DNA from: Bugula neritina | Lineage: Eukaryota; Animalia; Bryozoa | Length of the DNA: 64,000 nt | NCBI GenBank assembly: GCA_964035545.1 | Contig: OZ037773.1 | Span: forward strand, 10,135,751 to 10,199,750 | Direction: 5' to 3' | Shown: one piece after another, positions 16,617 through 62,552 of the stretch | Position numbering within the stretch: the stretch's first letter is position 1 | Layout: each line of letters starts with the position of its first letter | Program-made: the position numbers and the translations under genes | Notes under the pieces: model-generated | The model's database searches: none | What the model saw: only the letters and a program-made list of their open reading frames with translations | What the model was told of the DNA's origin: nothing

Positions 16617-18146
16617 TTACTTCTTGCCTGCTGGGCCTCCATAATCTCCAATGTTGCCAGAAGCACTTTTGGTTTGTTTGTCAGCACCAACACACTGTCT
16701 CCCTCGGCAGTGATGATTCTCATATCTACAGTATCTTGTCCTCATCTGTTTGTAACATTCATCTTTCCTACTCACCCAGCTAGACCAGTCACTCCACACT
16801 CCATCAACTACAGCAGTTCAAGAATCATTTTTAACCTGTCTACACGTGACAAATATGTTTAAATGTTTTAATTTGTAAAGCTTCTCGCATAACAGTAGAT
16901 CTAAAATTTCCTAAATTTATATATTTACAATAAAAGTTGTAATAAGCCAAAGCTATGAGTTTATTATTACGTGCATTTAAAATTATTTTAATACCCTTTG
17001 GTGCTAATAAGGCCTCTCATGCATATTTCTATAAATAATGCTAAATAGCCTCCCGTACACCTCTATAATAATACATCCTTAATAAGTATATTTTTATACT
17101 AAAGGTTTTTTACAAATATATATTACAATGAGGTTTAAGATTTTACCTGGACAGCATTGAGTGTTACACATACGTCTGCTATAGTTACTTCTAACTCATC
17201 TGTTAATGTCTCTTCCATATCCGCCAGAAGGTTTAGTCTCACAGGATCTGCATCTTCTCTTTTCTCCACCACCACATGTCTTACTACATGCTCCATATTC
17301 TCCCCATTGGCCCCATTCACGTATTACTGTAGATCAGAAATATTACCACAACTCAAGAAGATTAAATGTGAATATGATCGTTAAAAGTAAAAATGTAACT
17401 ACCATGATTTTGAGCATATACGCTGAGAAGAGTTCTAACTTGGCTTCTTGATTTGTGTACATGAAAATACAACAAGTATAAACATTAAGGGTATATGAAC
17501 ACACCGCTGCGATGATAGTTGCCATTCGGTCGATTATAGTACATTCTACCAAAGCCATAGCCATCTGTCAACAAACCTAAACATTTAAATATATTGGTTT
17601 AATATTATATATCATACTTTGAGAATGAGATTATATATCATACAATAGTGTTTTTCAAAATCATGGTTTAATAAACTTCTTCTTTAAATCTAAATAATAA
17701 ATCATCTTCATAATATTATATAGATTAGGATGTTAACATAAGTAAGTTAGCAAATACTTACATAGAGCTGATGCCAAGGACAAGAAAACCAATATGTTCA
17801 TGGCTAAAAATTTAATCGAAAACACATAAATAGAAATAGTCAAATAGTGTAATCATATCAGAATACAACTTCATGTATGTTAATGTATAACTCGCATTAT
17901 GTATAATAGTAGTGAATAATTATAAGTATAATATGTAAAAATTCAACAGCCATTCATAAAATATATAATACCTTACTTATAGCGTGTCTCATATAAACAA
18001 ACATATATATGGTGAAGTGTAAAACAGGTGCGGAATAAAGATAAAAATTGTAAATTAAACAGAAGACAACTTTTTAAGAACACCAAGTGTAATATTAATA
18101 CACAATACAACTGTGTGAAAATATATCTGAGAAAGAGCTCACCCAT
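16617..18146 (-). pseudogene. Family A copy A6 with an in-frame TGA replacing a TSR1 cysteine; exons 18146..18143, 17803..17762, 17576..17505, 17326..17147, 16807..16617
   Basis: All exons are present (MAMNILVFLSLASALCLLTDG-YGFGRMYYNRPNGNYHRS-TSR1-TSR2...GGPAGKK*), but AGA TGT GTT GGA of the paralogs reads AGA TGA GTT AGA (TGA at 17198-17196). Confidence 0.8.
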
Positions 18147-20038: not shown

Positions 20039-21276
20039 ATGGGTAAGTCAATTTTATGCATGGAAACTTACTTTATTTTAAAAATCTTTTGATATGTTAA
20101 TAAACTTGTTTTTATTAAATGTTTGCTATAAAAACTATAAAACCTATTGTGTATTATAGTGTTTTGTTTAAAAATAAATTATTTGCCTTATAAATATTGT
20201 ATCTCCTAATTTTAATTTAACATTTTAGATTCCATGCAGAGTTGTTTTGTTTTTGACGCTGGCTTTATACATATGTAAGTACTAATATCAAAGTTTTGCA
20301 AACAAATAGAATATACTTTTTTTATCAAGAATAATTTTTAAATTAAGGTTATATAAATTTAATTGATTTTTAAAAATACCGTTGCTACATTTATCCAATC
20401 TAATACTTTCTATGTATACATTTATTTAAATTATACTGCTAATTGTGTATTTAAATAGTATATGAGGCCTTAATTGTTTTTGATGCTACTTTATCTGTAA
20501 GTTGAGTTTTCTATATTCATTTAGATAAGCCAAATAGTAAAAATTATTTTCTAGTTTACGTCTTTTTATTATCAATATATATAAATATATTGACTTCATA
20601 CTTTCACTTTTATAGACTCTTTGACAGAGGGGTATCTCCCAGAGCAGCACGGTAGTAAGTGGTCATACTCTTAACTAAGAAAACTAGGGTCTGGAATTGT
20701 TATATTTACACTATAATCAATTAGCCAAGTTCAAACCTATTGTCTTATGCATGTATAACTATTACATCAACTTGCTAATCTAAGAATAAAAATTATTATC
20801 TGTTCAAACAAAGAATATTTTTAAATACATGGAAAAAATTAGGTCAAAATATATTTAAATTCAAATTCAAGCAAATCATGAAGACTATTAAATATATATT
20901 TTTTAAAAACAAACAGAATAACCCTTCTTTGCTAATCATTTGTTTGAGCATTAAGGATATTTTAGTTATCATCATAGTGGTGGGTTTCTATGCATTTACC
21001 AAATAATGGTGCATATTGTTACTCTTAACTTTCATAGAAATGACATCCTTGTTTACTGATCTTGAGTTGTGGTAATATGTCTAATTTACAGTAATACGTG
21101 AATGGGGCCAATGGACCAAGTACGGAGCATGTAGTAAAACATGTGGTGGTGGAGAACAGATTAGATTCAGAGACTGCGTGAGACTAAACCTACCGGCACA
21201 TTTGCAATAGACATTAACAGATGTCTTGGAAATAACTATTATAGCATACGCAGGTGTAACCAGCAATACTGTCCAG
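20039..21276 (+). pseudogene. Family A pseudogene A7 (A2-like 5' end)
   Basis: ATGG/GT at 20039. The signal exon 20229..20274 has a 4-nt insertion (frameshift); exon 20616..20654 follows. The TSR1 exon 21092..21276 has a 2-nt frameshift (GACTGCGTGAGACT) and CC changed to YC. No TSR2 exon found downstream. Confidence 0.82.
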
Positions 21277-29690: not shown

Positions 29691-31278
29691 ATGGGTGAGT
29701 AGCTATAATCATTAGTTATAGGTTGTGGTTTATAAAGTCTATCTTTGATGCCAAGACTTTGAGATTATAATATTATATACATTACCATAGTCTAGTTACA
29801 GTATTGCTAAGCACAAACAAACTTTTTAAATTGATTTTTAAAAAAATCAATTTAGTACTAAGCATATAAATTTGATGATTTAGTTTTGCACAATCTATTG
29901 GGAAATTGATTGGTTTTTAGTTTTAGTCAATCAGGTGTCTGTTTGATTACCTTTTGAAATAAAAATTTTAACTTACATTTCTGTTGTAGGTTTCAAATTG
30001 GCCATCCTACTTGGACTTGCAGCTTTTGTTGGTAAGTATGCATATTATTGAAAAATATAATAAAATTATTATCAAATTGCAATCAAATTATGGCAAGCTT
30101 TAAAAGAAGTTTAAGTATACAGAACAAGCATCTAGCATTTAATGCCTACTTTATTTTGAATTTTTGCTCAGACTTTTTCTTGGTATTGCAAACAAAGTAT
30201 GTTTTATTTTATATTCAAATGAGTTTGTTCCTTACAATCACTGATTGCTATGTTGAGACGGCTATATACTAGTTAAGAGCTTGCTGATTTATTTTATTTA
30301 GTATAGACATATAATCATGTTTTAACTCAAAATTTAATAAACTGCTTTTTGTTTTATAACCAGCAATAACTGTAAATTAGAAATTAATCAGCCAATTAAA
30401 TGCCAGTTTATAATAAAGTTGTGCACTTCTACTTTCAGCTGTCATCAGTGCTAGCAGATACTACCCACAACCTAAGCACCATTCTTACAGTAAGTAACGA
30501 TAATTAACATCTTGTTGCGTTACAGGTTTCATCGAATGTTTTTTTTTATCACCAAAGACCTGTTTAAAACCAGAACTTTTTTCATTAGACATCTCTGTTG
30601 AATCTGTTTTCAGCCGTCAAAAACTGGAGCGCTTGGGGAGCCTACGGAGCATGCTCAGTGACATGTGGAGGTGGAGAGCAGAGGAGACACAGAACCTGTA
30701 AGACGACCACCATATATGGCTATGGTAAAGATCAGAACAACTGTGTTGGACCAACATACAGCAAGAGAAGATGCAACACTCAATGCTGCCCAGGTAAATA
30801 CCATAATGTAATTCCTGGGTAATATGGAGTTTTTCATAAATAGAAAAATATAGTTATGTCATTTGCAACAATTTTAGCACCATAAAATATAATAAATTTA
30901 TCAAAAGTCCTAAATAAGTCTGATACATTTAAAAGTTGTTATTGTGGCCTGAACTAGTCTGGTATAAGCATATATAATTATAACAGCTACCTTAGCAGTG
31001 CAACACTGGTGAAGGGTAATTCTGCGTCTTTAATACAGCAGGTTTTTCAAAGCTCTGGTTCTATAAAAGGTGGTTTTTGACATTTTAAGTTTTCTGTTGC
31101 AGTTGATGGAGCCTGGGGCAGCTGGTCTCACTGGGCAAAGAAATCTTCTTATGGATACAGCAAAGTACAGATCAGAACCAGACACTGCAACAACCCAGCA
31201 CCAAGCTGTGGAGGCAAAACTTGCCCTGGAGCTAGTTCTCAGACCAGAAAGGTCCGTGTCCACCGCCCTCATTACTAA
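29691..31278 (+). CDS. Family B secreted TSR protein B1, 150 aa; exons 29691..29694, 29990..30031, 30439..30489, 30614..30793, 31103..31278
   Basis: [61 protein letters not shown]...CNTQCCP-VDGAWGSWSHWAKKSSYGYSKVQIRTRHCNNPAPSCGGKTCPGASSQTRKVRVHRPHY*; all introns phase 1. Confidence 0.92.
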
Positions 31279-33722
31279 GTTGGGACCAAGCTCTAACTTG
31301 ACCTGGAAATGATTTGCGATTACGAAGTCTCTTGTTTTGTTATTTTCAACTTAATAGTTTTGTTGCGTTTTAAAATTTAAATTTTTTTGTTTGACAAGTG
31401 TCTTTGATTGTAGGATTAGAAGTAAATTGAGAAATAAAGCAATTTAAAAACTTATTCAAAAACTCCTCTTTATTTGTAGTACTAATATTGACATTCAACA
31501 ATAGTGATTCCTTTAACATTATAAACCAGTATAGTTATAAATATCAATCACCAATCATGGTGTATAAAATTTCAAATTTAATTTCAGCTTTGGGTAGAAT
31601 CTGTAAACAACAGTTTCATACCCGCATAAATTATGGACTAACTTGGCTTAAAACAAATATAACATCAATAATTGGAGAACTACCAAAAATATTTAAATGC
31701 TTTAGTCACTACTTTTATTATAAATAATATCCGTTGACTCCATAAAACAGTAGTAACGTGATAGGTGTCTGTAAGGTCTCTTATGATTGGCTAACACTCT
31801 GATTTATAAATTGCATTGTACACTAAAAAACTAAGCATAAATTGAAAGAAGAAATTTCAATGAGAATAAGCAACAAACATAAGAGTATATTGCAGAAAGT
31901 AGCCTAAGGTTAAAACAATACTTGAAGATTTGCTTGAATATTTTGTCAGCTATAGCAGCAAAAATAGATTTAGTGTGGAAGGCTACAGCTTTAGTTACCA
32001 TTATTCATTAAACTTGAACAAACTAGTTCATTTATATAAAAACCTTTCTTACAATATTTTTTCTAAACTAGAGATATCTTCAAATAAAATAGCATTCAGC
32101 TGTAGCCAATTCTATGAGCCACATCACTTGTTTACCTGAAGACAGCCTTCTCAACTTGTTACAGCTTAACGTCTGACAAATGATTTGATGCAATTACATA
32201 CCGACCAGAGCTAAAAGCTAATAGCAAATTATAAACACACTAACAGTGAACACAACTCCTTAATTAATAATGTTTATAATTTGTTTTAGTGTAGATATAA
32301 ATGTAAATGTAAATATTTTACTTACGACGCAGCTTAGAAAAGAACATCAGAAAACATATGCCACATCCGTGAGTGTACTTGTGCATATAAAAAACAACTT
32401 TGTATATTGAACAGTTTTTCTCAAAGTACTCCATTGCTCAAACTATCCCGGCTTCCTCTACCAACTTATAGAGCTTTTGAAAAACTCTACAATGTCAAGG
32501 TACCAAACTAAAGAGTAAAGTTGAGTACCATAAAACTCTGTCCAGTATCAAAACAAAACTCTTTTAGATGGCGAACCTTTGGCTACTTATTCTGCATATA
32601 TAGTAGTTAGGATTTTGCTGTTACATTTGATACTGCTAACATTTTTTCACTTTTAATAAAGCTTCTATCTGCACTAAAGCAAATTATGAATGTTACTTAA
32701 GTTGCGTTATTGGCTTTACAGAGCTAATTTGATATCATTATATAATTACATTGGAACACTATGGTTAGGTGCTTAGCTGTCTTAGGTTAAAATGAACTAT
32801 AGGTTTTCATGAAAACAAGTATAATGGTCGTGGCACATTTATATATTGAGCTATTATAGCTGAATATAAATATGACCGCATCACAATTAAATATATTTTT
32901 GAAGATCTAAACAAATAATTTAATATAATTTTTATAATTGAATGGATACTTTCAAGTTTATTGAAGAAGGGCAACTAAAATGATAGCTCTCTAAAGTTAA
33001 TTCGTGCTACTTATAGCTGCCAAAATATTCAGCCAAATATTTTAGCTTTTTATGACTATATGTCAATTTTTTAAAAAATACTTCAAATTATTATACACTT
33101 TATATTTGTTTATTAATTCTTTTCAAGATTTGTTATTTTAATTAACTTGTTTATTTCAATGTGTGAAGGAGTTGCTTTTGCAGTGTTAGCCAATCATTAG
33201 GAATTTTACAAGTGTCTATCAGGCTACTGCTGTCTTTTGATGTCGGAGTTTAATTATATAGTAAAAGTAGAGACTAGACTGGACTAGAGCATTTAAATAT
33301 TGATCGTAGTTCTTCAATTATCAGTACTATATTTGTTTTTATATTTAAGTTGCCATAAGCTAATTGGACAAGTAGGAAAATGTCGTTTACAGAGCCTATA
33401 AGCCCAAGCTGAAATTGGATTTGAAATTTTATACAGTATGATTGGTGATTGATATTTATAATTCCTGGTTTATAATGTTAAGAAAAAAAACTATTCTTGT
33501 TGAATGTCAATATATTAGTGCTGCAAATAATGATGAACTTTTGAATTACTTTTATTGAATTGCTTTATTTTTCAATTTACTTCTACTACTACACTCAGTG
33601 ACATTCATTAAACAAAACATTTAAAATTTAAAACATAACAAAATTATTAAGTTGAAAGTAACAAAAAAAGAAACTTCATAATCATAAATCATTTCCAGGT
33701 CAAGTTAGAGTTTGGTCTTAAC

Positions 33723-37455: not shown

Positions 37456-39128
37456 ATGGGTAAGTAGCTATAATCATTGGTTATAGGTTGTGGTTTATAA
37501 AGTCTATCTTTGATGCAAAGACTTTGAGATTATAATATTATATACATTACCATAGTCTAGTTACAGTATTGCTAAGCACAAACAAACTTTTAAAAAACAA
37601 TTGTTAAAAAATCTTTAAAGTATTAAGCCTATAAATTTGATGATTTAGTTTTGCACAATCTATTGGGAAATTGATTGGTTTTTCGTTTTAGCAAATCAGG
37701 TGTCTGTGTGATTAATCTTTGAAATACAAATTTTAACTTACATTTCTGTTGTAGGTTTCAAATTGGCCATCATACTTGGACTTGCAGCTTTCGTTGGTAA
37801 GAATGTAGATTACATTAAAATAGAACTATTTTATAGTATTTATATTTGATGTTTTATAGTTACCAAGAAAAATATAGTGTACATAACTTTGCAATATTTT
37901 CAAATTGTTGCAATCAAAATATATATTATATACCAAGTTTTAAAAAAAAGTCCATAAATAGAATAAGTATTGCATTCATTAATTTTTTATTTTTGCTGGG
38001 AGTTGCTACCAGTATTACAAATAAATTATATTTATTTTATTCATGTTTTTTTATACAATAACTGAATGCTATGTTGAGAAGAATAAAATTAAGATTTTGC
38101 TAATTCCTTTCAGTTATTAAGACATGCATAGTCACACATGTTTCAACTCAAAATATATGAAGCTGATTGTTTATTATTATAACTAAAAGTTTCCTAAAGA
38201 TGCATGCAGGGAGCAATATTTGTCAATTGTCAGCTAGTCAGCCAATCAAATGCATGTTTATAGTGGAGTTGTGCACTTCTACTTTCAGCTGTCATCAGTG
38301 CTAGCGGATACCACCCACGACCTAAGCACCACCGCCGCCAGCCTCAGCCTTACCATCCACCTAGGCGCCATTCTTACAGTAAGTAACAATAATTAACACC
38401 TTGTTGCGGTACAAGTTTCAGCGAGTGTCTTCTTATCGCCGAAGAGCTGTTTAAAATTAGAACCTTTCCCAATAGACATATCTGTTGAATTTGTTTGCAG
38501 CCGTCAAAAACTGGAGTGCTTGGGGAGCCTATGGAGCATGCTCAGTGACATGTGGAGGTGGAGAACAGAAGAGATACAGAACCTGTAAGGCGACCACCAT
38601 ATATGGCTATGGTAAAGATCAGGACAACTGTGTTGGACCAACATACAGCAGGAGAAGATGCAACACTCACTGCTGCCCAGGTAAATACCATAATCCAATT
38701 TCTGGATAATAGAGTCATTTTTAAATAGAAAATCCATAGTTTTTTCAATAAAGTTAGCACCACTGTTTTATATAAATACGCAATCTTGAATAAATTTATT
38801 GCATCTAAAAATGCTACAATGACTGAAACTAGTCAGCTGGACATCCATGTTTATAACAGGTACATAGTAGTGCTATGGCTAGTCAAAGCTAGTTTTATTA
38901 AACTTTGGTTCTATAAAACTGCAGTTACTATACTTCAAGTTTTCTGTTGTAGTTGATGGAGCCTGGGGAAGATGGTCTCACTGGGCCAACAAATCTTCTT
39001 ACGGATACCAGAAGGTGCAGATGAGAACCAGACACTGCAACTACCCAGCACCAAAATGTGGAGGTCGTTACTGCTATGGAGCTAGTTCTCAGACCAGAAA
39101 GGTCCGTGTCCACCTCCCTCATTACTAA
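37456..39128 (+). CDS. Family B secreted TSR protein B3, 163 aa; exons 37456..37459, 37755..37796, 38289..38378, 38501..38680, 38953..39128
   Basis: Near-identical to B2, open frame, intact splice sites; the promoter lacks the TATA box. Confidence 0.9.
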
Positions 39129-40881
39129 GTTAAGACCAAACTCTAACTTGACCTGGAAATGATTTATGATTATGAAGTTTCCTTTTTTGTTACTTTCAAC
39201 TTAATAATTTTGTTATGTTTTAAACTCTAAATGTTTTTGTTTCATTAATGTCATTGATTGTAGTAGTAGAAGTAAATTGAAAAATAAAGCAATTCAATAA
39301 AAGTAATTCAAGAGTTCGTGATCATTATTTGCAGCACTAATATATTGACATTCAACAAGAATTTTTTTTTTCTCAACATTATAAACCAGGAATTATAAAT
39401 ATCAATCACCAACCATACTGCATAAAATTTCAAATCCAATTTCAGCTTGGGGTAGAATCTCCAAACCACTCAAATAGTTTACAGCAACTTACATAAAAAC
39501 AAATATAGCATTGATATTGAAGAATTACCATCAATACTTAAATGCTCTAGCCAGTACTTTTACTATAATTAACTGCTGACATCAAAAAACAGCAGTAGCC
39601 TGATAGACATTTGTAAAGTTCAAGATGATTGGCTAACACTGCAAAAGCAAGTAAATTGAAATAACAAATCTGGATAAGAAAAAATAACAAATTCAAAGTG
39701 TGCAATAATTTAAAACATTTTTAATAAACAAATGACATATATATAAGGTCAGACAAATACTGAAAATTTTGACTGAATATTTTGTGACTTATAAGTAGCA
39801 CAAATTGATTAAATCTGAAGGGCTACAATTTTAGTTTCACTAAACGTGAAAGTATCTCTTCAATTATAAAAATTATATTGAATTATACTTCTGAATTAAG
39901 ATCTCTTTAACAAATGTGTTTTAACTATGATGCAGTCATATTGAAATTCAGCTACAGCTTAATCTATATCTGCCACAACCATCACTTGTTTTCATGGAAA
40001 CCTAGCTGCTCCTAACTTGGGACAGCTGAGCACCTGACTATAGTGTTCTAATGTACTTATATAACAATGTTAAACCAGCCAATAAAGCTAATAACTTGAA
40101 CTAAAAGAACACTCTATATATAGTAGATAACACAACTCCAATAACTTTCATAATTTGCTTTAGTGTAGATATAAAAGCTTTATTCAGTGTGAAAAAATGT
40201 TAGCAGTATCAACTGTGTCAGTGAGATTATATAACTAATTTTTGCTCAAGTGCCAACTGTCAACTTAACTGTCTTTCTTCATCTATAATTGTATTTTCCA
40301 CGTTTTCCTATATACGCTGCATTTTGTTCTAGCTTTTTAATAATTTGCTGTAACACTCCTACAAATTTAGTTAAGCACGTTTGGAGTTGTCTCCTTCTTG
40401 TGACAGATCACGGTAAAGCTTTTAGAACTACAGGATGAGTCAGCTTTTCAAATTCTGATACGTACTGCACCTTACATAAAATAATCTAAAAATAACACCT
40501 GCATGGCAATCTGTCATATATAGCTAACATCAAGACACTTGATTTCCTAGTCTACTAGATATATATTTGTCTGCCATGTTGGCCAGCAGTCCAATGCAAC
40601 CCCATTATGTGCTCTAAAGCAGTATAGAATACATGACCTACATATAACTTATCACAAAATGAGTAAGCAGTAGACTGTATAGTTTACTCTCCTTTAATAT
40701 TAGCCATAACTATAAACAATGTAAGAAATCAATATCAATAATCCATGTCAATAATCAATGGATAGTGATACTTAATTATTACTAATACTTATGAAAAGTT
40801 GATATATGATTAATATCATTATTTGATATCAAAACCAACTATATAATCCACATCAGTAAACAATTATATTTATTAGTATTA

Positions 40882-41017
<136 letters not shown>

Positions 41018-41321
41018 ATTGATACTATAAAATATTTGTTGAGTTAAGGAGAAAAAATAAATGCATTTTTGCTTTTATTATGCACAATCTATTTTAGTAT
41101 ATCTTACGGCATATTCTAAAAGCTAAATGTCATATTGCTACAATATTTTAAGGATTTTCAATTCATAAAAGCTTTAATTTTTTAATTACAATATTTTGCA
41201 ATTTTTGCATTTCTAATTTGTTGATTTTACATACATTTAAATAGCTCTCAAAGTGTATTTCTACAAGTAAGTATTTTCAGCAATTAAAATATATATAATT
41301 AAATTTATCTCTATATTCACA

Positions 41322-42505
41322 AAGAAGCAGTGGTCAGCCTAGAGTCCCTGGACCTCCTGCTCTAAGTACTGCGGGGGAGGTGAGAGAATGCGCCACAAGA
41401 CTTGTGAGACAACCACTCACTAAGGAACTGGTAACCCAGCTTCTTACAGTTGTAGAGGCAGTCCTCATGGAAAGGTGAAATGCAACACTCAGTGTAAGTG
41501 CACAAAGTTATTATTTGTTTACACTCGCACAGTTTAATCATGGAGTGGATATAATAATTCTTTTTATTTGTTAATCATTTTTATATCAAAAGCAGTTTAA
41601 TGCCTATATATACACTTTTTTTTCAGTTTTGTCTAATTTAAAAAAATAACATTAATACTTTTATCAAAGTTGTATTAGAAAGCCAATGTTGACTATACTA
41701 TGTCATCCTTTACTTATGCAGTAAAAATTATTAATCCTTAACTCATTATTTTGGAAAAAGAAATCATCAGATAGATCTATTTTTACCTTTCTCTGTATCA
41801 GAATTTTTAAATTTTTCAGTTGAATTTTGTATAACTTCATTTTTTAAATTTATCAAATATATATTATTTTTGATCTACCAACAATTGAATATTTTTAATA
41901 CTGTATTATAGCTATAAAAAGATATTCTCAGCAAAAGAAAAATAATTTGAGTTGTAATTATGAAATATTTTTCTAGACCCAAAAAAGCAGTGGTCACAGC
42001 GGGGTCCATGAACAGTTCGCTCAAAGACTTGTGGTGGAGGAGAGAGAATGATATACAGAACTTGTGAGGCAGCTTCAACTTCCAAAAGTTGCAAAGGTGA
42101 TCTTCACGGAAAGATAGCCTGCAACACCCATTACTGCCCATGTAAGTGTAAAGTTAATTATTTCTAAATTGTCACACTGATCTATCAGCGAACTTTCAGT
42201 TGTTCATGAGCCTTATATAGCTTTTATAGTTTTCTATTCTTCTATTTCTTCGCTTGGCTTTTTTCATTATTAAAACGTTAATTAAAGTTCATTAGTAATT
42301 CATTTTAAAATTTTGATTTCCTATTGCAACTTTAAAAATAGTTTGTTGTTCTACAAATGTTCTTTTTTGAAAAGAAATACTTTCATTAGTTGAAATCATT
42401 CTTGTTTGAATAAACTTTCTCTAGTGAAATTAAATTTGAATCATGTCAATTTGGGTTTTAGATACACGGAGCTATACTAAACCGCCACGCACAAGGACAA
42501 GATAA
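41322..42505 (+). pseudogene. TSR pseudogene related to the 42962 gene: exons ~41322..41493, 41977..42141 and probable last exon 42462..42505
   Basis: KKQWSA*SPWTSCSKYCGGGERMRHKTCETTTH*GTG...CRGSPHGKVKCNTQ and PKKQWSQRGP*TVRSKTCGGGERMIYRTC...CNTHYCP contain in-frame stops and end in GTAAGT donors; then YTRSYTKPPRTRTR*. Confidence 0.8.
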
Positions 42506-42892
42506 GCAATGAATGTATCCAAATAGGTGGGCTTTAATGTACAGTTACTATATGCACTCATCTAATTATTGCACAAAGTCAATAGTGGCAATTTCATCAA
42601 TCAAGACGTTAAGCATACTGTATATGTAAATTTAATTAAATTATAGATGAATAATCAGAAAAAAAAGGAGTTATTTGATAAGTACTTCCATACTAGAAAC
42701 TTACGCTTGCTAAAACAGAATGTGTTTGAAATAAAAAGGAAATAAGATGATTACACTGCATGTGTTGTTAGACATAAGTATGATTAGTTAGCTAGTACTT
42801 GAAGTACACCATGGTCATGGTAATTAATTACATAACGGCCTTCTTTGACAACTCTAATTAGAAAGAGTTCCTTATGGCCCTACTTTCAGCAG

Positions 42893-42899
42893 TATAAAA
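42893..42899 (+). promoter_or_regulatory. TATA box of the Tyr/His-repeat TSR gene
   Basis: TATAAAA 69 nt upstream of the ATG at 42962; TCAGCA about 29 nt downstream of the TATA. Confidence 0.65.
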
Positions 42900-42961: not shown

Positions 42962-44755
42962 ATGGGTAAGTCCAATGTAAACACCTTTCTTTAAGAAATG
43001 CTGCAAATTATACACTAAATTATAGCACTATATTATAGCTGTGCTAAAGCATTTATACATAATAGAAATGTTTTTAGTTATATTTGCTATAAGCTGAGCC
43101 TTCTTACTGTATATTTTTACTTTCAGATTCAAAGATTTTGCTTACTCTCGGACTCGTGGTTATCTTAGGTAAGTCTTTCAAATTAAAACATAAACTTTGA
43201 TTTTTTTACAATTTACTTGATTTATGTAAAACCTTAATAAAACATTCACACTTTATATTGAATTCATAAATCATTGACTGCATAATTTGTTTGTAATTGT
43301 CTTTCCAATAAAACGTAGAAATCTCACTGAGTATAAAGTTATTTTACTAAATTATGTGGGAATGTTTTTTATTCAGGATGTGTCAACGCATCTTATAACA
43401 CCAAAAGCTACAACACCCACAACAATGTTCACAACAACGGCTACAACACCCACAACAATGTTCACAACAACCGCTACAACACCCACCATGCCCAAAGGCA
43501 ATGTAAGTACACATATTTCTTAAAATGATCATCTGAATTGAGTTTTTGGTAAATTGGCTTTTTAAAAATCAATTTTAATAACAATTCGACATATCAAAAA
43601 TATATTACTGATGTATTACTATTTCCATATAAATATATAAAAGCAATTATCTTCATGTTTCAAATCTGCTATAAAATTTAAAAACTTATAATTGTAAGCA
43701 AACAGTGCCACCTTCAATAAAATATTTTATACGAGTTTGAGCAAAACAAAACAGTATTTTACAAAATAAAATGAAAAAATATTAAATTGATGCAGGTTTA
43801 AATTGTATTTATTCCAATCGATTTTATTTTGTGTTTTTCTTTGTTACTTGATAAATGTATATATCTGAATGTTTGATCTGTAAAGCATATTATTAATTTT
43901 GTAAATTTTTCAACAAATTAAAATTCTAATAAAACTAATGTTATCTCAATTGTAGACACGACAAAGCAGTGGTCACAATGGGGATACTGGAGCTCCTGCA
44001 CAAAGACTTGCGGTGGCGGTGAAATGAGAAGACACAGAACCTGTGAAACTAAGACACATTACGGGGCTGGTTACTCAACCTCCCACGGTTGTAGAGGCAG
44101 TTCTTACGCAAGGAGGAGATGCAACACTCACCGATGCCCATGTAAGCTCTCAAAAACAAAATTTAGCAGCCGTTAATTTGTGTCCTTCCAGTAATTCATG
44201 GCTATTTTTTATAATTATTTCATGTTTTTTAGCTTTTTTATAAAAAACAGTATCGAGGTTTTGTATAATATAGTCCAATATGGTCTGTGTTTTTGCTTCT
44301 TTGCATGGAAATATTTACTAATTACTAATTACTAATTACTATTACTAATTGAAATGGCAATTATTTTCGCATTACTTTTAAAAGCTGCAAATAAGTTCCA
44401 CATTTGTATTTTATTCAATTAATTTTTCTTTTTAGATGTCCCAAGCTATAGCCACCATGCCACACCAAGCTACAACAAACATGTCTCACGACCTTACACC
44501 AGACATGCCACACCCACTTACAACAGACACGCCCCACAATCTTACAACAGACATGCCACACCCACTTACAACAGACATGCCACACCCACTTACACCAGAC
44601 ATGCCACACGATCTTACACCAGACATGCCACACGACCTTACACCAGACACACCCCACGACGTTACAGCACTCATGTCAGACGAAGCCATAGCCGACCAGC
44701 ACCAACCCACTACAACACTAAACCCAGATACCACCAACGCTCATCAAGCTATTAA
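42962..44755 (+). CDS. Secreted protein, 225 aa: Asn/His repeats, single TSR, Tyr-x-x-His octapeptide array; exons 42962..42965, 43127..43168, 43377..43502, 43956..44141, 44436..44755
   Basis: MDSKILLTLGLVVILGCVNA-SYNTKS(YNTHNNVHNNx)2[39 protein letters not shown]...CNTHRCP-YVPS YSHHATPS YNKHVSRP YTRHATPT YNRHAPQS YNRHATPT...YHQRSSSY*; phase-1 splicing fixes the frame. Confidence 0.88.
44447..44686 (+). repeat. Coding 24-bp tandem repeat, about 10 units (consensus TACAMCAGACATGCCACACCCACT)
   Basis: Visible 24-bp periodicity encoding Y(N/T)RHATP(T/S). Confidence 0.9.
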
Positions 44756-46089
44756 GCCCAGACATTTTGCAAACTCTGCCGAGTTTCAAAATTTCCAAAA
44801 CGATAACGGATTGTCTTAGCCTATTACCTATTGAAATATTGCTAGTTGTTACTTTAAAAGTTTAGTTCTTGTTATGTTTTTGTTAATGTTGTTTTTTAGC
44901 GGTAATTAGAAAATGTTGTTACTTTCTTTTCCTACAATACAAATATCTATAATATGCATTCAAATTAGAAAGTTTCAATTCTTCTTTGACAGAACTCCAA
45001 AAACTAGAATTCATACAAATCTCAGTATAGTCTTTAGTCAACAATTCTGCTTATTATACTCACTTGCATTCTAACTTAAGAAGCAAATCACTATATTTAC
45101 ATTGAACTTCTCATAAACTTTTCACTATAAAAATACATGGGCTGCCCTTTAGTATTTTGACAATATAGCAAGATTAGTTTCAGTAGGAGTTGTCATATCA
45201 CATTGATACTCTGTCTATTCAATTGGTTGTATGCATGCAACATCACAAAGTGCTACTGAGAACTCTTTCACTCAATAAACAAATATTAGTTGAGACATAT
45301 ACTTTAATTAGGAAGTCGTATATAAGTTGTGATTCTCAAAACTGAAAACTTTTATCATCTTTTTTACCATTTTGTAAATAAACATTCAGCAATGAATTGA
45401 CAGCTGCAGGTACCTAAGGCACAACTTCACTTTGGTACCAGGAAGTTTTCCCAATTCATTCCGGTGTTAATTTTAATGCTTTTATTAAGCCAAAAACTAA
45501 TGTCAAAAAATGTGCTTAGAACCAATTGTGATCATAAATTATACTATGGGTCATAAATTTAAAATATAAAAATCGTCTTATGTAACCTTTTTCCATCACC
45601 AAATTTTAATCACTATTTTCATGGTAACACAACTTCTACCTATTAAGTAGTATTTTGCTTGTTCATTTGAAAAGAAGCAGTTTTTACTGCCAGCAAGAAT
45701 AGTTTCACAGAACTTGAACAGAATACATGCAGAATTTATTTGTGTGGCATCAGTAATTAACTGGATATGGTATTCCCATCTAAACTAACCGATTTAACTC
45801 TTCCAAAAGCAAAAATTTATAAAAAAACTGCATATCTTTTAATTATAGAACCAAGAATAGTTTTTAGTGTTTTCCTAGCACCTAATAATGATTTCTAAAG
45901 TCGTTCTGTGATGCTTTGTGTATTAAGTTACATCATCACAATTATAGACTCGATATTTGACTTGATATTTCAACAATATGGGGAGAGAATTTAGAGCAGC
46001 TTTCCATATCTATAGCAGAGACACAAATTAACGAGCTTTTAAACAAATGCTACTAATTTTTAACTTTCATAATCAATGATAGCTTAGAG

Positions 46090-51818: not shown

Positions 51819-54800
51819 TTATATCTTAGTCAACAATATCCACAAAACCAGAACGTAACATAAGCCAGCTGTCTTGGTAACTCCACTGTTGGGTGCAGGT
51901 GTTGCTGTTGGTGAAATGACCTCATCTTTTAGCCTTAAGATTTTCCTTGTGTTGTACATACGAGACGAGACATCCATTTGTCCTTCCCCAAATTCATAGA
52001 AATATTGTCTAGACTTTGAATAAGGTTTCCATATAATCTCAGAGCTATTGGTGACAGGGTGCCTATATATAAAGTAAGAGTATTTTATTAATTCCTAATC
52101 AAGCAATTTTGGGGAAGACAACTTCTATATTTGAAAGTGCTCCTAACAATATTTTTATAACAATTGGTTAGATTATTTTATATCATATTCAATTAAATTA
52201 AACTAAATTTAAGGTAATTTTAGGTGGTCTACATATGAGTAAGGTATTGAAGCAATATGAAAAGCTTTGATGGGTTGTGTTTTAACAATAGCTGAATAAT
52301 ATCTTTGCAAACTATTGTAAGCTTTCGTCTTGCCTAATTGTAGCACAAAACAGATAAAATATAACTGCAGTATTTGTATTTATTAACTTACTTCAGATTA
52401 TGGTGGGCTATACAAATATTTATGATAGTTTAATTCTACTTAGTCGCAGTAAATCAGCTATAAGGGCTGAAATTATTAAACCTGAACTTCTGTACCAATT
52501 TGACCTCTCACCCCGTTCTAATAAAGTTGCCCCACGCCTCCATCATCTCGTCATTTAGTCCCACTTCTCGCTCAGTCATCTGATAATCTGGGAGATTGTA
52601 AAATGTTGGATGTTTGCCAAATACAAAAGTTCTCTCGTCTGTGTGCCTTGATCCACGAAACCTGCAGGAGAATTTCAAGCAGAAAGTTTCAAATTAGCTA
52701 AACTATCATAATATTATTAAAATAAACTTATAGCAGCATGGAAGGAGTATAATTATCAGCTGCTTTATGATGAATTAATATTCTTGCTAACATATTGCAG
52801 ATCGAGCTGAAAATGTGTTTGAAATTCTTGAATGGAATACAAAAATATTTTTATTCGCTCACTAAATAGTATATCAATATTATAATACTTGTTTAATTAG
52901 CCATTTATTTTTCGTGTCTGAAATTATTTACAGCAACTACATTATATCTAGTAGGTTCAGGCAAACCTGAGCCTAACTACCAGAAAAGAGTTGTGAACAC
53001 TCCAACAGATAACAAAGTTAAGTTGACATATAATCATGGATCAGGTGATGAGACCCGTGTGACCACAGATTATGTATAAAAGCTAGGACATAGTGACATG
53101 ACTCACCAGGAGGGATTCTTACTCTGAGAGTCGTGAGTCTCGTAGGTAAATGTGTACATGTAGGTGGAGGTGGTGCTCTGCTCGGAGTGACTGTCTAGCA
53201 GGGCTATGGTCGGCGCTCTAAACAGCATATCCGAGAAGATATTGAGGATAATTCCGGCTACCTCTGGCGAGGGATCACTGCTCAATGCGACGTCTCTGAA
53301 GTAAATGTCCTTAACATTGTCCTTGACACGCTCATATGAGTTGGGGAAGTAACTCCGCAGGTATTCGTTGAGGAACTGTTCAGCCATGTATTGGTTTGCC
53401 CCCTCCTCGATGGTGAACCCCTGGGCTCTAGCTAGTCTGTTTAGGTAGGTGAGTATCAAACTACCCTCCTGGGTGTTGAACCCTCCCAGGTAGTCGTAGG
53501 ATTGGAACTTGGAAATTATCTTCTCTCTTACAGCAGCTGAAACATTGTAACAGTCTCTTATCAAGATTATAAGTGGATAATAAAAGTTGATATAAAAAGA
53601 GCAACAAACTATATTGATTAGTTTAAAGAATTTTCTAAATTATATTTACATCAGCTTGAATACCAACAGCTTTCCTATGAGACATTTAGCAGAGTCATTA
53701 AATTTAGGCGACACGAACAAATCAGCGCAACTAGCCTCACTTTGCATAATATTACAGTGAAAAAATGAAAAATAATTTTTTTATTATTTATAATATTAGA
53801 CACGTGCAACTATATATAAACAAGGGAGAAGGGCAAATAACTGAAAATCGTTTACAGTCTAATTGACTTCAAAATCTTCATTCACGTTAAAGCAAAACAA
53901 AGTGATTCATTAGCATGCAAATTTATTCAAGTACATTGAGACACAATATATTGCATATATAATATCTTGTCAAATTGCAACTAACTCATGAACAGATAAC
54001 TCTTACCATCAATCTCTTCTCCTTTCCTGAAATATCTCCAGACTTCAAACAAGTCAGTTTTAATGATCTCATTCTCATAGAAAGGAGCGTAGAAATACAA
54101 CGTTGGGAATGTTCCCAGTAGATCAGCAGATAGCTTCCTTGCATACTCATCAACCTTCACTGCATCTTTCTTTAACAATTATTATTAAACAATATAAATT
54201 TTATCATGAAAAGTCAAGTATAAAGTGAATGTTTCTATAGCTGTTGATTATTCAAATAGAAAATGAAAGATTTATATAGCTTAAATAATTGTTAATGTTA
54301 TAGTTTTTGTTGTTACTATTAACAATACCATAAATAAATTCTATATTTCACAATAGCATGCCATGCTTACTGTTGAGTAAATTAATCAGAATTCATTCTG
54401 TTTTACAGCTGCATGTAAACCCAATAAACATCTTATCACAATAATATATTGATAAAAGTTGTATTTGCTGAGGTATATACCAGCTTTAAAATTATTATGA
54501 TGTCACCATTTTCTATGAATTTGAGGAGTCGTCTTATTTTGTTAACGATTATTGTAATTAAGAGTTTTCCTTTACACTCAGTTACTAATCTTGAAATATA
54601 ATTTGACATTTTTTAATAGATGAACACTTAAATTTAGGTTACCACTTGAATTAGTGTTTACATAGAGATGGTTATAAAAGTGCTTTGTTTACCATGGAGT
54701 GTGAAAGACTAAAGTTATATGTTTAAAAACCTTAATGTTTCATTGAAATATTCCTAAAAAGTTATTTTGCGAAGTCAGTTGAATTTAGTTTTACAACTAT

Positions 54801-57027
54801 ATTGCACATGATAAAAAAGAAGACAACTGCACTATTTGTATCAAATTCTACTTTCAAGAGGAAGCAACTCCTATAACTCACCTCTCTGAGACAGTCCACA
54901 TCACTGCAACCAAACTCTTCTAATATTCGTTTCCTGACCGTTTCAGTCGGGGGACTGATGAGCTTTGGGCACAGGAAGTTTCCGCTGGCGCCAATTATCC
55001 GGTGAAAAAGGCCGGTGAACACGTCTGAGGTGGCCATCAGAGTGACTGCCATGCCACCTGCCGACCCTCCATATATGGTCACACGACTCTTGTCACCTCC
55101 AAAGCTTTCGATGTTGTTCTGGACCCACTCGAGGGCCAACTTCATATCCCAAAATGCAAAGTTGTCGACTAATCCGTCGCCATCGATATCAAAGTATCCC
55201 ATGATCCCGAGGCGGTAGTTGATGGTGACGACCAGGATATCCTGTCTAGCGGCCAAGAACCTTCCATCATACTCTGTAGCAGCTCCTCTGGAGTAACCTC
55301 CCCCGTGTATCCACACCAAAACAGCTTTCCTAGAACTGCTCTCAACTGAAATAATTATAGACATTATAGCGTTATACCAAGATATTGTACGTAAACTTAT
55401 TTCACTTATACGTGGTACTTCTCAGATTAGATTCTAAAATGTTAATGTTACCAACTTTATTTATGAGTATTTCATCAAAGCAAAGTGTGATACCCTTACA
55501 TGTCTCATTGTCATATATTCTATTTGAAAGTCTAAAAGAAGTACAGAAACAAAAAATATATATGATAACGCTTTCTGACAGGATTATATTGAACTCTTGA
55601 CCTATTTATGACCTTCTAGTCTACAGTTGTTGAATTTACAGTTACATAGACTTGAATCAAGCATGCATAAAATATTTATCTTCATTGAAGCAGCTAGTCT
55701 TACTGTACTAATCTGCTGCACATGGCATAAATCAATAACATGAAAAGCAATAATATTGCTGTTATGTCACTAAAAAATCATTTTGTCCTAATTTAATCAC
55801 TGTATTGAACTACTACTTGTCTATCATAACAATCTAGTAACACAAGATGATGATGACCATGAAAGTATACAGTATGTTATACTAACACAATAATTATGTT
55901 GTTGCAATGCATAGTGAAAAGCTTACATCTCTGCAATGTATTATGAATGCAATTAATATAATATAATATTACAGCTAGTCAATTACTCCAACCAACTTTC
56001 ACTTAAACTAAGAGAATATATAGTTAAGATAAAAAGTCACATTTGATAATCTTTACCTTGATATTAGCCATGAGATTGTGGTCCGATTTATGCATAAACG
56101 TAAAACGATGAATGCATATCATTCTAGCTGCACAATATTCAGTTTACTGATCAATGAAGGTCTGTGGAATAGTACACTGAAATGAAGAATACATGCAGAG
56201 AGCACATACCTGGAGCTCGAGAGTAAATATTCAGAGTCAAACAATCTTCTGAGTTATTGTAGTTAGCCCTAGTTCCAGCTGTAGTCTGAATACAGGAAGT
56301 TCCCATAGTCCCATCATTGCGGGTGACAAAGACATCCCCCCATGCTGGCACAGGCTGAGGTTTCTTCCATCTTCCAGTCCCTTGAAGTGAAACAGTTTAT
56401 TTGTTGTACAGAAAACATTTGGCTTCCACTCTGAAGTATAATTGATGTTATATAACTATATTATGCATTTTAAATATAATTGCATGATTAAAGAGATCAA
56501 TGTAATACAGAGCTAAAATCCTTAAAAAGATGCTGCCTTTATTACAAAAATCAGAAGCTGCCTGTTCACTAAATATAATTTTACATATCATGTCCAAAGT
56601 GGCATGAAACCACAAATACAAACTATTTGATGAAATAGAGCAATAAAATGAGTCATCTAAAGTAGCTGACAGCTACTATGCAATCAGCAGGTATAACTAT
56701 AGTCTAAGTGATGCAATCAGCAGGTATAACTCTTCCTATAAGTAACCATCAACAGACTCCAACCAAACAAACTATAAAATAAAGCTGGAGATAACTTGAC
56801 AGAAACATACCAGTGCTGGTAGGTGGCTGAGCGTAAGGAATACCGTAGAACCTAGCAACCTGCAGACTACTGTCAATATCTTCAGTGAAGCCCTGTATCC
56901 TCCCCTGTGGTGTATCAACAGTTACGGCAGCAATAGACTGAGTTGCAGCATAGTCTGCAGCAGCAAGAAGTGTGACTATCACTAGCCACCATTGCCTGCC
57001 CCTCAGCCTGAGGAAACCAATGCCCAT
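51819..57027 (-). CDS. Type-B carboxylesterase/cholinesterase-family hydrolase, ~612 aa, probably GPI-anchored; exons 57027..56811, 56380..56210, 55345..54882, 54169..54007, 53536..53107, 52661..52512, 52062..51819
   Basis: Signal peptide, FYGIPYAQPP, SEDCLTLNIY, VWIHGGGY oxyanion loop, NYRLG, FGGDKSRVTIYGGSAGG (Ser), GFNTQEG (Glu), GSRHTDE (His), WGNFIRTG, and C-terminal PNSG followed by a hydrophobic tail. Exon phases give one open frame. Confidence 0.93.
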
Positions 57028-60007: not shown

Positions 60008-60014
60008 TATAAAA
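60008..60014 (+). promoter_or_regulatory. TATA box of the Gly-His-Ser-Pro repeat gene
   Basis: TATAAAA 66 nt upstream of ATGG/GTAAGT at 60074. Confidence 0.62.
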
Positions 60015-60073
60015 AGGTGTGAAATCAAGACAAAAGTACTATTGTTTAGAAAGCTGTCACCATAGATGCAAAG

Positions 60074-62552
60074 ATGGGTAAGTCGTTGTATTTTATTCAT
60101 CAACACTCTGCTAAGCAGAAGTAAATTCTTTGAAACTCATTTCTAAAATCACCTGCTATTCTGAAAGATCGTATATAATAAATACTTATGAATGTAAACT
60201 CACATGCCTCTGCAAAGCAAAGTTGATTAACTTCCGTTCATCAAAATGAGTTATAAGATAAGTGTCTACTTGATGAGCTTGCACTTTGATTTGTTTAATC
60301 TTTTTAAATTTATCTAATAAATTGCCAAAAAGTGTAGATATCATATGGCTTGTAAAAAGTGAGTTTATCTTGCTCTTCATATCTATTTCTACTATTTTTG
60401 ATTAACCAAAACATTAGGCTTATAGTTTTTTAGCCTAACACAAATAAAACAACTTGTTACTGGTATACATGTTCATTATAAATTGGCTGTTTTATGTTTT
60501 AGACAAAAGAAGTTGTGTGATCCTGGTTCTAATATTAGGTAAGTCAAGAAACTACTTTCAACTATAATAATAAAAGACATATTTTTGTACAATTATCTTT
60601 TGTAAAATCCATTTATAGTTCTGGCTATGCGTGCTGTTGTATACCTTTAGTCCTGGCTATATTTTATGTTCTACTAGGATTGGCTGTTGCTAATCAGCAG
60701 CTTTTCAGAAACAAAAGAAGGACCTATGGTGGCAGACGAAGAGGAAGTGACCGAAGCGATGACCAAAGTTTCGGCACTATAATTTTAATATGTAAGTTTA
60801 ATTTGTTGATACTTGAATGTGTTTACCCAATGAAACATGATATAGAAGTAAAACATATAAAAGTTGATTAACATAATTAACAATCAAATCACTTTTTACA
60901 ACACAGAATTTATGGTACTTTTAGCACATGGCGGTCCTGGAAGACATGGTCAGTCAGCTGCTGCTCCAGGTGGACATGGTAGCCCCGCCCAATCTCCAAG
61001 TGGACATGGTAGCCCTGCCCACTCACCAAGTGGTCATGGTAGCCCCGCCCACTCACCAAGTGGACATGGTAGCCCTGCCCAGTCACCAAGCGGACATGGT
61101 AGCCCCGCCCATTCACCAAGTAGACATGGTAGCCCCACCCATTCACCAAGTGGACATGGTAGCCCTGCCCACTCACCAAGTGGTCATGGTAGCCCCGCCC
61201 ACTTACCAAGTGGACATGGTAGCCCTGCCCAGTCACCAAGCGGACATGGTAGCCCCGCCCATTCACCAAGTGGACATGGTAGCCCCGCCCATTCACCAAG
61301 TGGACATGGTAGCCCTGCCCATTCACCAAGTGGACATGGTAGCCCTGCCCATTCACCAAGTGGTCATGGTAGTCCCGCCCACTCACCAAGTGGACATGGT
61401 AGCCCTGCCCAGTCACCAAGCGGACATGGTAGCCCTGCCCATTCACCAAGTGGACATGGTAGCCCCGCCCATTCACCAAGTGGACATGGTAGCCCTGCCC
61501 ATTCACCAAGTGGACATGGTAGCCCTGCCCACTCACCAAGTGGTCATGGTAGTCCCGCCCACTCACCAAGTGGACATGGTAGCCCTGCCCAGTCACCAAG
61601 CGGACATGGTAGCCCCGCCCATTCACCAAGTGGACATGGTAGCCCCGCCCATTCACCAAGTAGACATGGTAGCCCTGCCCACTCACCAAGTGGTCATGGT
61701 AGCCCTGCCCACTCACCAAGTGGACATGGTAGCCCCGCTCACTCACCAAGTGGACACAGAGCACCATCTCATTCGCCAAGTGGTCACGGATCACATGGAG
61801 GTCATGGTAAACCATCCCATTCACCAAGTGGTCACGGAGCACCATCTCATTCACCAAGTGGTCACGGATCACATGGAGGTCATGGTAAACCATCTCATTC
61901 ACCAAGTGGTCACGGAGCACCCTCTCATTCACCAAGTGGTCATGGAGCACCAAGAGGACATGGAGCACCATCTCATTCACCAAGTGGACACGGAGCACCA
62001 TCTCATTCACCAAGTGGACACGGATCACCCTCTCATTCACCAAGTGGGCATAGAGCACCAAGAGGTCACGGAGCACCCTCTCATTCACCAAGTGGTCACG
62101 GATCACATGGAGGTCATGGTAAACCATCTCATTCACCAAGTGGACACGGAGCACCATCTCATTCACCAAGTGGTCACGGAGCCCCATCTCATTCACCAAG
62201 TGGACACGGAGCCCCATCTCATTCACCAAGTGGACACGGAGCACCCTCTCATTCACCAAGTGGTCACGGAGCCCCATCTCATTTACCAAGTGGACACGGA
62301 GCACCCTCTCATTCACCAAGTGGACACGGAGCACCCTCTCATTCACCAAGTGGTCACGGAGCCCCATCTCATTCACCAAGTGGACACGGAGCACCATCTC
62401 ATTCACCAAGTGGTCACAGATCACATGGAGGTCATGGTAGTCCATCTCATTCACCAAATGGGCATAGAGCACCGCATGGTCATGTTTCCAGACCTCACCG
62501 TAGATACTATGGTCCAAGAAGCAAAGGCCACAGGTCTACTGGACGATACTAA
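60074..62552 (+). CDS. Secreted Gly/His/Ser/Pro decapeptide-repeat protein, ~593 aa; exons 60074..60077, 60503..60538, 60678..60791 (donor could be at 60767), 60925..62552
   Basis: MDKRSCVILVLILGLAVA signal peptide, QQLFRNKR furin-type site, (GHGSPAHSPS)26, then GHGAPSHSPS-type units, ending HVSRPHRRYYGPRSKGHRSTGRY*. Variation among repeat units is mostly synonymous in this frame; introns are phase 1. Confidence 0.88.
60972..62460 (+). repeat. Coding 30-bp tandem array: 26 GHGSPAHSPS units (60972..61751), then GHGAPSHSPS units with 18-bp inserts
   Basis: Strict 30-bp periodicity; Gln-variant units recur at 61212, 61392 and 61572 (180-bp higher-order repeat). Confidence 0.97.

Follow-up and report, generated by a model that had tools for sequence, protein, structure and literature searches.

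A predicted secreted thrombospondin-repeat protein with a Tyr-x-x-His octapeptide tail, from a tandem gene family of the bryozoan Bugula neritina

Introduction

In mussels, the foot protein Mfp-1 consists of Tyr/Lys/Pro/Thr decapeptide repeats with DOPA, and Mfp-4 is His-rich. Squid beak proteins illustrate another use of the same residues: deprotonation of histidine, followed by His-Tyr hydrogen bonding and stacking of tyrosines, drives their phase separation (PMC6884462). Still other marine adhesives are TSR-only or TSP1-domain proteins, among them sea anemone TSRL, the byssal TSP1 proteins of Pinctada and adhesive candidates of ascidians (PMC12817120). It should be noted that in the literature we searched no adhesive or cuticle protein of a bryozoan was found, and that bryozoans go unmentioned in a review from 2025 on marine adhesive proteins. 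Bugula neritina ranks among the major fouling animals.

Here we describe a gene of this species whose predicted product, judged from its sequence, would fall among the secreted proteins that combine a TSR with Tyr-rich low-complexity sequence in sessile marine animals, as a member of a Bugula-specific family. The gene lies in a 64-kb stretch of chromosome 9 (C9:10135751-10199750; hereafter the window), which is AT-rich throughout (~30% GC). A first-pass annotation of the window had proposed a three-part protein and a chemistry of adhesion or hardening. The analysis below adds that the gene belongs to a large tandem family, specific to Bugula and fast-evolving, whose members have leader exons and a C-terminal tyrosine in common.

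Materials and methods

Database and genome searches were run exon by exon, and residue totals were tallied without joining. Genome searches covered 216,009,554 bases; the Darwin Tree of Life assembly of Bugula neritina is described as 216.00 Mb in 9 chromosomal pseudomolecules (PMC11480708). Leader exons were surveyed over 165 kb stitched around the window. Window coordinates refer to the forward strand unless marked (-).

Results

Gene structure and reading frame

The TSR gene, spliced by hand and checked by translation, comprises five exons at 42962-44755. The coding part of exon 1 (42962-42965) consists of ATGG followed by a GTAAGT donor (ATGGGTAAGT at 42962), a mini first exon that is common to the family. 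Exon 2 (43127-43168; 42 nt, phase 1-1) encodes the hydrophobic core of a predicted signal peptide, M-D-SKILLTLGLVVIL-G, while exon 3 (43377-43502) opens with CVNASYNTKSYNTHNNVHNN, runs through a likely cleavage region (GCVNA/SY) and continues into an Asn/His/Tyr block. Exon 4 (43956-44141) encodes one thrombospondin type 1 repeat (TSR), and exon 5 (44436-44755) a basic tail that ends SSSY-stop (TAA). All four introns are of the GT-AG type and in phase 1; they start with GTAAGT or GTAAGC and end with CAG or TAG, and the codons split at the four junctions are D, G, Y and Y. A putative promoter element read from the sequence, TATAAAA at 42893-42899, lies 69 nt 5' of the ATG, and a similar TATA-to-ATG layout is found in a gene for a Gly-His-Ser-Pro (GHSP) polymer in the same window. 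Two AATAAA motifs, at 45274-45279 (the first after the stop) and 45377-45382, are tentative poly(A) signals; the first of them would give a 3'UTR of ~0.5 kb. The product is very probably secreted.

The first-pass annotation had held that the open reading frame track misreads these exons, and this is indeed the case. Both wrong-frame readings are present in the list, which is of bacterial style (TTPTTMF at 43287-43523 and DMPHPLT at 44436-44819), and splice phase gives other frames. At the junction 44141^44436, the acceptor AG at 44435 is the first AG past a strong polypyrimidine tract. Cryptic AGs occur 10 and 16 nt downstream, at 44445 and 44451, and use of either would lead into the acidic DMPH frame, in which the protein would end in NGLS, that is, in a terminal serine. 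The basic tail frame is assigned because of the continuity of phase from the ATG through the signal exon into the TSR, the position of the first AG, and family features that fit that frame alone. Independent support comes from the C-termini of the family, since all eight intact ones that were read end in tyrosine. Moreover, the paralogue nearest in its TSR (63% identity) shares the exon plan and has a repeat tail of His and Tyr with a terminal tyrosine, in agreement with the modelled frame. Variation by codon position across the ten tail units left the three frames indistinguishable overall; purely synonymous variation is confined to the Tyr and His codons of the tail, a pattern that is not significant after correction for post-hoc choice. 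In our opinion, it is highly probable that the gene and its frame are correct as given.

The opposing reading is that the gene is not functional as modelled, being a silent recent duplicate, or that its tail exon is used in the acidic frame or not at all. The two cryptic acceptors are compatible with this, as are the several decayed copies in the cluster and the lack of a transcript or protein match in the word, 1.84-billion-representative and JGI searches described below. Against it stand an open frame maintained over five exons with canonical splice sites and a TATA box, diagnostic TSR residues that are intact beside a decayed copy, and a strong contrast in GC between exons (45-52%) and introns (21-27%); the modelled frame also reproduces the basic Tyr/His composition and the terminal tyrosine of the family. 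We consider a non-functional gene, or a different use of the tail exon, quite improbable.

Architecture of the predicted protein

The predicted product has ~224 residues, of which ~205-210 would remain in the mature protein, and is strongly cationic. The mature form contains 33 Lys and Arg against 2 Asp and Glu, for a net charge of ~+31, together with 24 His and 23 Tyr. The proposed triblock of Asn/His repeats, a TSR and a Tyr-x-x-His tail is borne out by exon translation, by the arrays detected with TRF and by the Pfam TSP_1 match.

The N-terminal block in exon 3 is built of 2.4 copies of the 11-residue unit YNTHNNVHNN(G/R), encoded by a 33-nt DNA unit with 97% matches (TRF). It has no Pfam match, and a genome search found no second copy. 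Exon 4 matches PF00090 (TSP_1) over profile positions 1-49 of 49 with 32.9 bits against a cut-off of 21.6 (E 7.6e-8). Translation and alignment to the thrombospondin-1 TSRs demonstrate that it keeps the WxxWxxW motif, the CxxS/TCG consensus for O-fucosylation and all six cysteines. Among solved structures in the PDB, its matches range from E 3e-16 to 1e-10, those to the thrombospondin-1 TSRs reaching 3e-16, and include properdin as well.

The tail comprises 106 residues if the tyrosine at the junction is counted and 105 without it. Counting in the exon 5 translation recovers what had been claimed for it: a length of about 106 residues, ten Tyr-x-x-His octapeptides and no acidic residue. The ten octapeptides are consecutive, with tyrosine at position 1 and histidine at position 4 (consensus Y-T/N-R-H-A-T-P-T), and are followed by about three degenerate units. 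Asp and Glu are absent and so is Gly; the tail contains 17 Arg, 2 Lys, 14 His, 14 Tyr, 17 Thr, 12 Ser and 12 Pro.

Origin of the repeats and of the Tyr/His register

The DNA of the tail is a 24-nt tandem array (44456-44684; 8-9.5 copies, 79-84% matches, TRF score 227-281). This array and the 33-nt array of exon 3 are real repeats and not chance resemblances; both low-complexity blocks flanking the TSR are young and arose by tandem duplication of their 33-nt and 24-nt units. Two of the tail units are identical in DNA, which indicates that the 24-nt array is still turning over. Every one of the ten units retains its tyrosine and histidine; variation is seen at positions 2, 3 and 5-8. Given the tandem duplication of a 24-nt unit, the exact register of the two residues is most simply regarded as a by-product, for which no functional explanation beyond that duplication is needed.

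The same fact is part of the case for a passive matrix protein, a basic protein of the lightly calcified body wall, heavily O-glycosylated and mucin-like or else associated with mineral, in which Thr, Ser and Pro would carry glycans, no oxidative chemistry would take place and the register would have no role. Such a protein would make use of the 17 Thr, 12 Ser and 12 Pro found among 105 tail residues, and in the shell matrix proteome of a brachiopod, proteins with TSP_1 domains rank with the domain classes of highest abundance (PMC13425148). The retention of Tyr and His in every unit while the other positions vary argues the other way, as does the recurrence of Tyr/His enrichment in the independently expanded tails of paralogues; moreover, the repeat proteins of shell matrix are more often acidic. 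On balance we consider a purely passive role unlikely.

Searches for relatives

A word search with the tail over 5.8 billion clusters came back blank, within a length window that excluded proteins of ~224 residues. An exhaustive phmmer search of 1.84 billion representatives yielded 37 weak matches, all of them unrelated low-complexity repeats (one primase-like), with no self-match, and the ESM Atlas gave no usable match to the tail. When the TSR exon was used in the word search, subject to the same exclusion of ~224-residue proteins, no orthologue or transcript fragment was returned; a scan of JGI metagenomes with that exon retrieved generic eukaryotic TSRs alone, at no more than 47% identity over the full domain. 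The product of the TSR gene is thus apparently absent from the searched protein collections. In the genome the tail is unique, the other matches containing many stops or different repeats.

The likeness to mussel Mfp-1 that had been suggested for the tail does not hold as a sequence relationship: the tail has no Pfam family, no match in the word search and no related match among the 1.84 billion representatives. Composition by itself is insufficient to define a DOPA protein.

One Y-x-x-H look-alike in the genome, SYNLHLRP at C1:34.02 Mb (L003 1230-1830), was rejected. It is a 24/26-nt minisatellite, judged non-coding because its 26-nt units break the frame and it has no gene context. That it spells perfect SYNLHLRP octapeptides in one frame is a caution for composition-based searches of this genome.

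A leader-sharing family on chromosome 9

The TSR gene belongs to a tandem cluster on chromosome 9 that comprises ~20 genes with one or two TSRs each. About 12 TSR exons lie in the window, at 47-56% identity to exon 4, and a genome search with the TSR exon gave 24 matches at E<1e-8, of which 22 fall on C9 between 9.83 and 10.18 Mb. In the 165 kb surveyed, the mini first exon ATGG/GTAAG (ATGGGTAAG) occurs 13 times and is followed in seven cases by a 42-nt phase-1 signal exon. Signal exons of the family are 36-42 nt long and in phase 1, with a start of the form M-D/G-x-K/R and a hydrophobic core, features that the TSR gene shares. The leader cassette is present also in the L025 paralogue and, with a 36-nt exon, in the GHSP gene. 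The leader and promoter DNA of the TSR gene showed no similarity to those of its neighbours at E<1e-3. The family leader is conserved in structure and peptide but not at the nucleotide level.

The closest TSR paralogue, the 63%-identical one at locus L025, lies 65 kb upstream. Its plan begins with the ATGG exon, the 42-nt signal exon and a Tyr/His-rich linker; its TSR is entered via a split Tyr codon, and a second TSR follows, with a tail in which five His/Tyr 11-mers lead up to KPNY-stop. Two further genes, at locus L024, lack a TSR but have a signal exon 77% identical to that of the TSR gene. Their tail exon starts HYVPTT, compared with YVPSY in the TSR gene, continues in Tyr/His hexamers for over 270 residues and terminates in PHY-stop. 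The GHSP gene (60008-62552; 60074-62552 counted from the ATGG) has a TATA box, ATGG/GTAAGT at 60074 and a 36-nt signal exon, MDKRSCVILVLIL. Because its leader has the same design, this gene, which encodes more than 540 residues and ends GRY-stop, belongs to the leader-sharing group. H(R/L)PHY-stop is the terminus of the window's three double-TSR genes.

Thus, a C-terminal tyrosine, often as PHY-stop, is present in all eight intact family members read, the TSR gene included. The corresponding places are 31103-31279, 33898-33722 (-), 38953-39129, 44750-44755 and 62550 in the window, and L025:6243-6248 and L025:409-414. The occurrence of this terminus across TSR proteins, TSR-less repeat proteins and the GHSP protein suggests that this residue may serve as a handle for processing, sorting or cross-linking. 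Several paralogues have expanded different Tyr/His-rich tails, each independently. The TSR gene is the only member seen to combine a single TSR with a long tail of Y-x-x-H octapeptides and an N-terminal Asn/His repeat.

Three other features of the region should be mentioned. Two family genes form an inverted pair at C9:10121392-10121607 (-) and C9:10125183-10125398 (+) (L030, L031). They have the leader MDTRVVLFLALALCI and an exon that is short, His-rich and strongly basic (KVHGKKHHRRPHGKYHHRHE), so that the family includes yet another independent module rich in His and Tyr. Between the TSR cluster and the GHSP gene, exons at 53103-57027 (-) belong to a gene of carboxylesterase type (VWIHGGGY, GGSAGG). 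Finally, a tandem array at C9:10202100-10205400 (L033), with repeats ~200-400 bp apart, has putative minus-strand open frames rich in Tyr, His and Thr (HTSTLYSPYTIYSPSY).

Decayed copies and turnover of the family

Just upstream of the TSR gene lies a decayed paralogue (41319-42506) with two TSR exons and a short tail exon. The first TSR exon (41319-41489) contains TAG and TAA stops, and the second (41985-42141) a TGA stop and the changes W to R and C to R; the tail exon (42462-42506) reads YTRSYTKPPRTRTR-stop. No leader for this copy was found from 39.2 to 41.3 kb, an interval that contains a long (TA)n tract (40890-41015). The copy illustrates the course of neutral decay in this region. The TSR gene retains six Cys and three Trp beside this copy with its three stops and its lost Trp and Cys, which argues that selection maintains the TSR gene. 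Alignment of the two tail exons scores ~3 SD above shuffled sequences (z ~3) but is exceeded by the best shuffle; this weak alignment hints that the long tail may have grown from a short Tyr/Arg/Thr tail like that of the decayed copy.

Further damaged TSR exons are found at 17148-17321 (-) and 21097-21275 (+), one interrupted by a TGA in frame and the other broken by a frame shift, and point to ongoing birth and death of family members. Taken together, the sequences portray a lineage-specific, tandemly duplicated family that evolves by birth and death.

Turnover of this kind, in which pseudogenes arise and tails diverge rapidly, is a typical trait of immune families and brings into consideration a function in host defence or metal handling. 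The TSR would then be a recognition module as in properdin, which follows thrombospondin-1 among its solved-structure relatives, and the tail a histatin-like antimicrobial or a Zn/Cu-binding segment, possibly released by proteolysis. Histatins are rich in His, Tyr, Arg and Lys and end in tyrosine. A mature protein with 24 His and a net charge of ~+31 suits such a role. Opposed to this are the lack of dibasic processing sites flanking the tail and its Thr/Pro-rich spacing, which is unlike that of amphipathic antimicrobial peptides. The family neighbours also include very long, material-like repeat polymers (the GHSP protein and the Tyr/His hexamers of the TSR-less genes), and such polymers sharing the leader favour a role in a material over one in defence. 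We think a defence or metal-handling function unlikely, if somewhat less so than a passive matrix role.

Discussion

A possible component of an extracellular material

The explanation that in our opinion best fits the observations as a whole is an intact, secreted gene of the TSR family whose product ends up in an extracellular material; we would put it at about an even chance. A structural or adhesive role for the protein, argued from its composition, by analogy with known systems and from its GHSP neighbour, is held at a similar, middling level of confidence. The product would be exported into cuticle, attachment glue or the matrix of the body wall, where glycans or proteins of the matrix could serve as docking sites for the folded TSR. 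The tail, disordered and rich in Tyr, His and Arg, would act as a multivalent sticky segment, through cation-pi contacts between Arg and Tyr and hydrogen bonds between His and Tyr, and may condense as its histidines deprotonate at the pH of seawater, as in the squid beak proteins. Once condensed, the tail might conceivably be hardened by oxidation of its tyrosines. Such hardening is possible in that the genome contains at least one locus with a tyrosinase domain, located on another chromosome and unlinked to the TSR gene.

DOPA formation or His-catechol cross-linking in the tail, as advanced by the first-pass annotation, is a conjecture that we regard as improbable. Two points count against the material reading in general. 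The tail lacks Gly and almost lacks Lys, unlike most characterised DOPA proteins or His-rich material proteins, and a family that expands in tandem, leaves pseudogenes and changes its tails quickly could equally well be one of immunity or defence.

A bolder version makes the Y-x-x-H register itself functional. Once its tyrosine is oxidised, each octapeptide would pair a catechol or quinone with its own imidazole at a fixed distance, so that the tail would be a self-contained, two-partner sclerotisation polymer, and the C-terminal tyrosine of the family would allow enzymatic end-linking of TSR, Tyr/His repeat and GHSP proteins into one network of bryozoan cuticle or glue. We rate this as a long shot; if true, it would amount to a material system undescribed in any phylum.

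Significance

The TSR gene and its family offer clonable candidates that join a TSR anchor with Tyr/His/Arg repeat tails. If the gene is expressed in cells secreting cuticle or glue, its tail would offer a new kind of sequence for the design of biomaterials that respond to pH or can be cross-linked. The cluster also displays the birth of repeat proteins: leader exons are fixed, domain exons are gained, lost and decayed, and short tails are expanded by tandem duplication.

Comparison with known systems

The TSR itself shares the WxxWxxW Trp ladder, the CxxTCG motif and the six cysteines with the repeats of thrombospondin-1 and properdin (7yyk, 3r6b, 1lsl, 1w0r). It differs from them in a loop that is 4-9 residues longer (THYGAGYSTSH) and in being a single domain set between low-complexity blocks.

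With the TSR-only and TSP1-domain adhesives of marine animals (PMC12817120), the Bugula protein has in common that it is a small, predicted secreted protein built on a TSR, from a sessile marine animal. Its similarity to them is generic to the TSR, and Tyr/His octapeptide tails are not described there.

The squid beak proteins (HBPs; PMC6884462) likewise contain a disordered modular repeat bearing His and Tyr. Their units are Gly/His-rich pentamers (with Ala and Tyr), in contrast to the Arg/Thr/Pro-rich octapeptide without Gly of the Bugula tail, and the two are not homologous.

Mussel Mfp-1 and Mfp-4 resemble the Bugula protein in their secretion, in their tandem short repeats, in the periodic arrangement of Tyr with basic residues and Pro, Thr or Ser, and in His-rich segments. 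They are not homologous to it, and the Bugula protein has Arg in place of Lys, no Gly in its repeat tail and a TSR domain. Tyrosine and histidine, which in mussels are allotted to separate foot proteins, are united in the Bugula tail within one and the same repeat.
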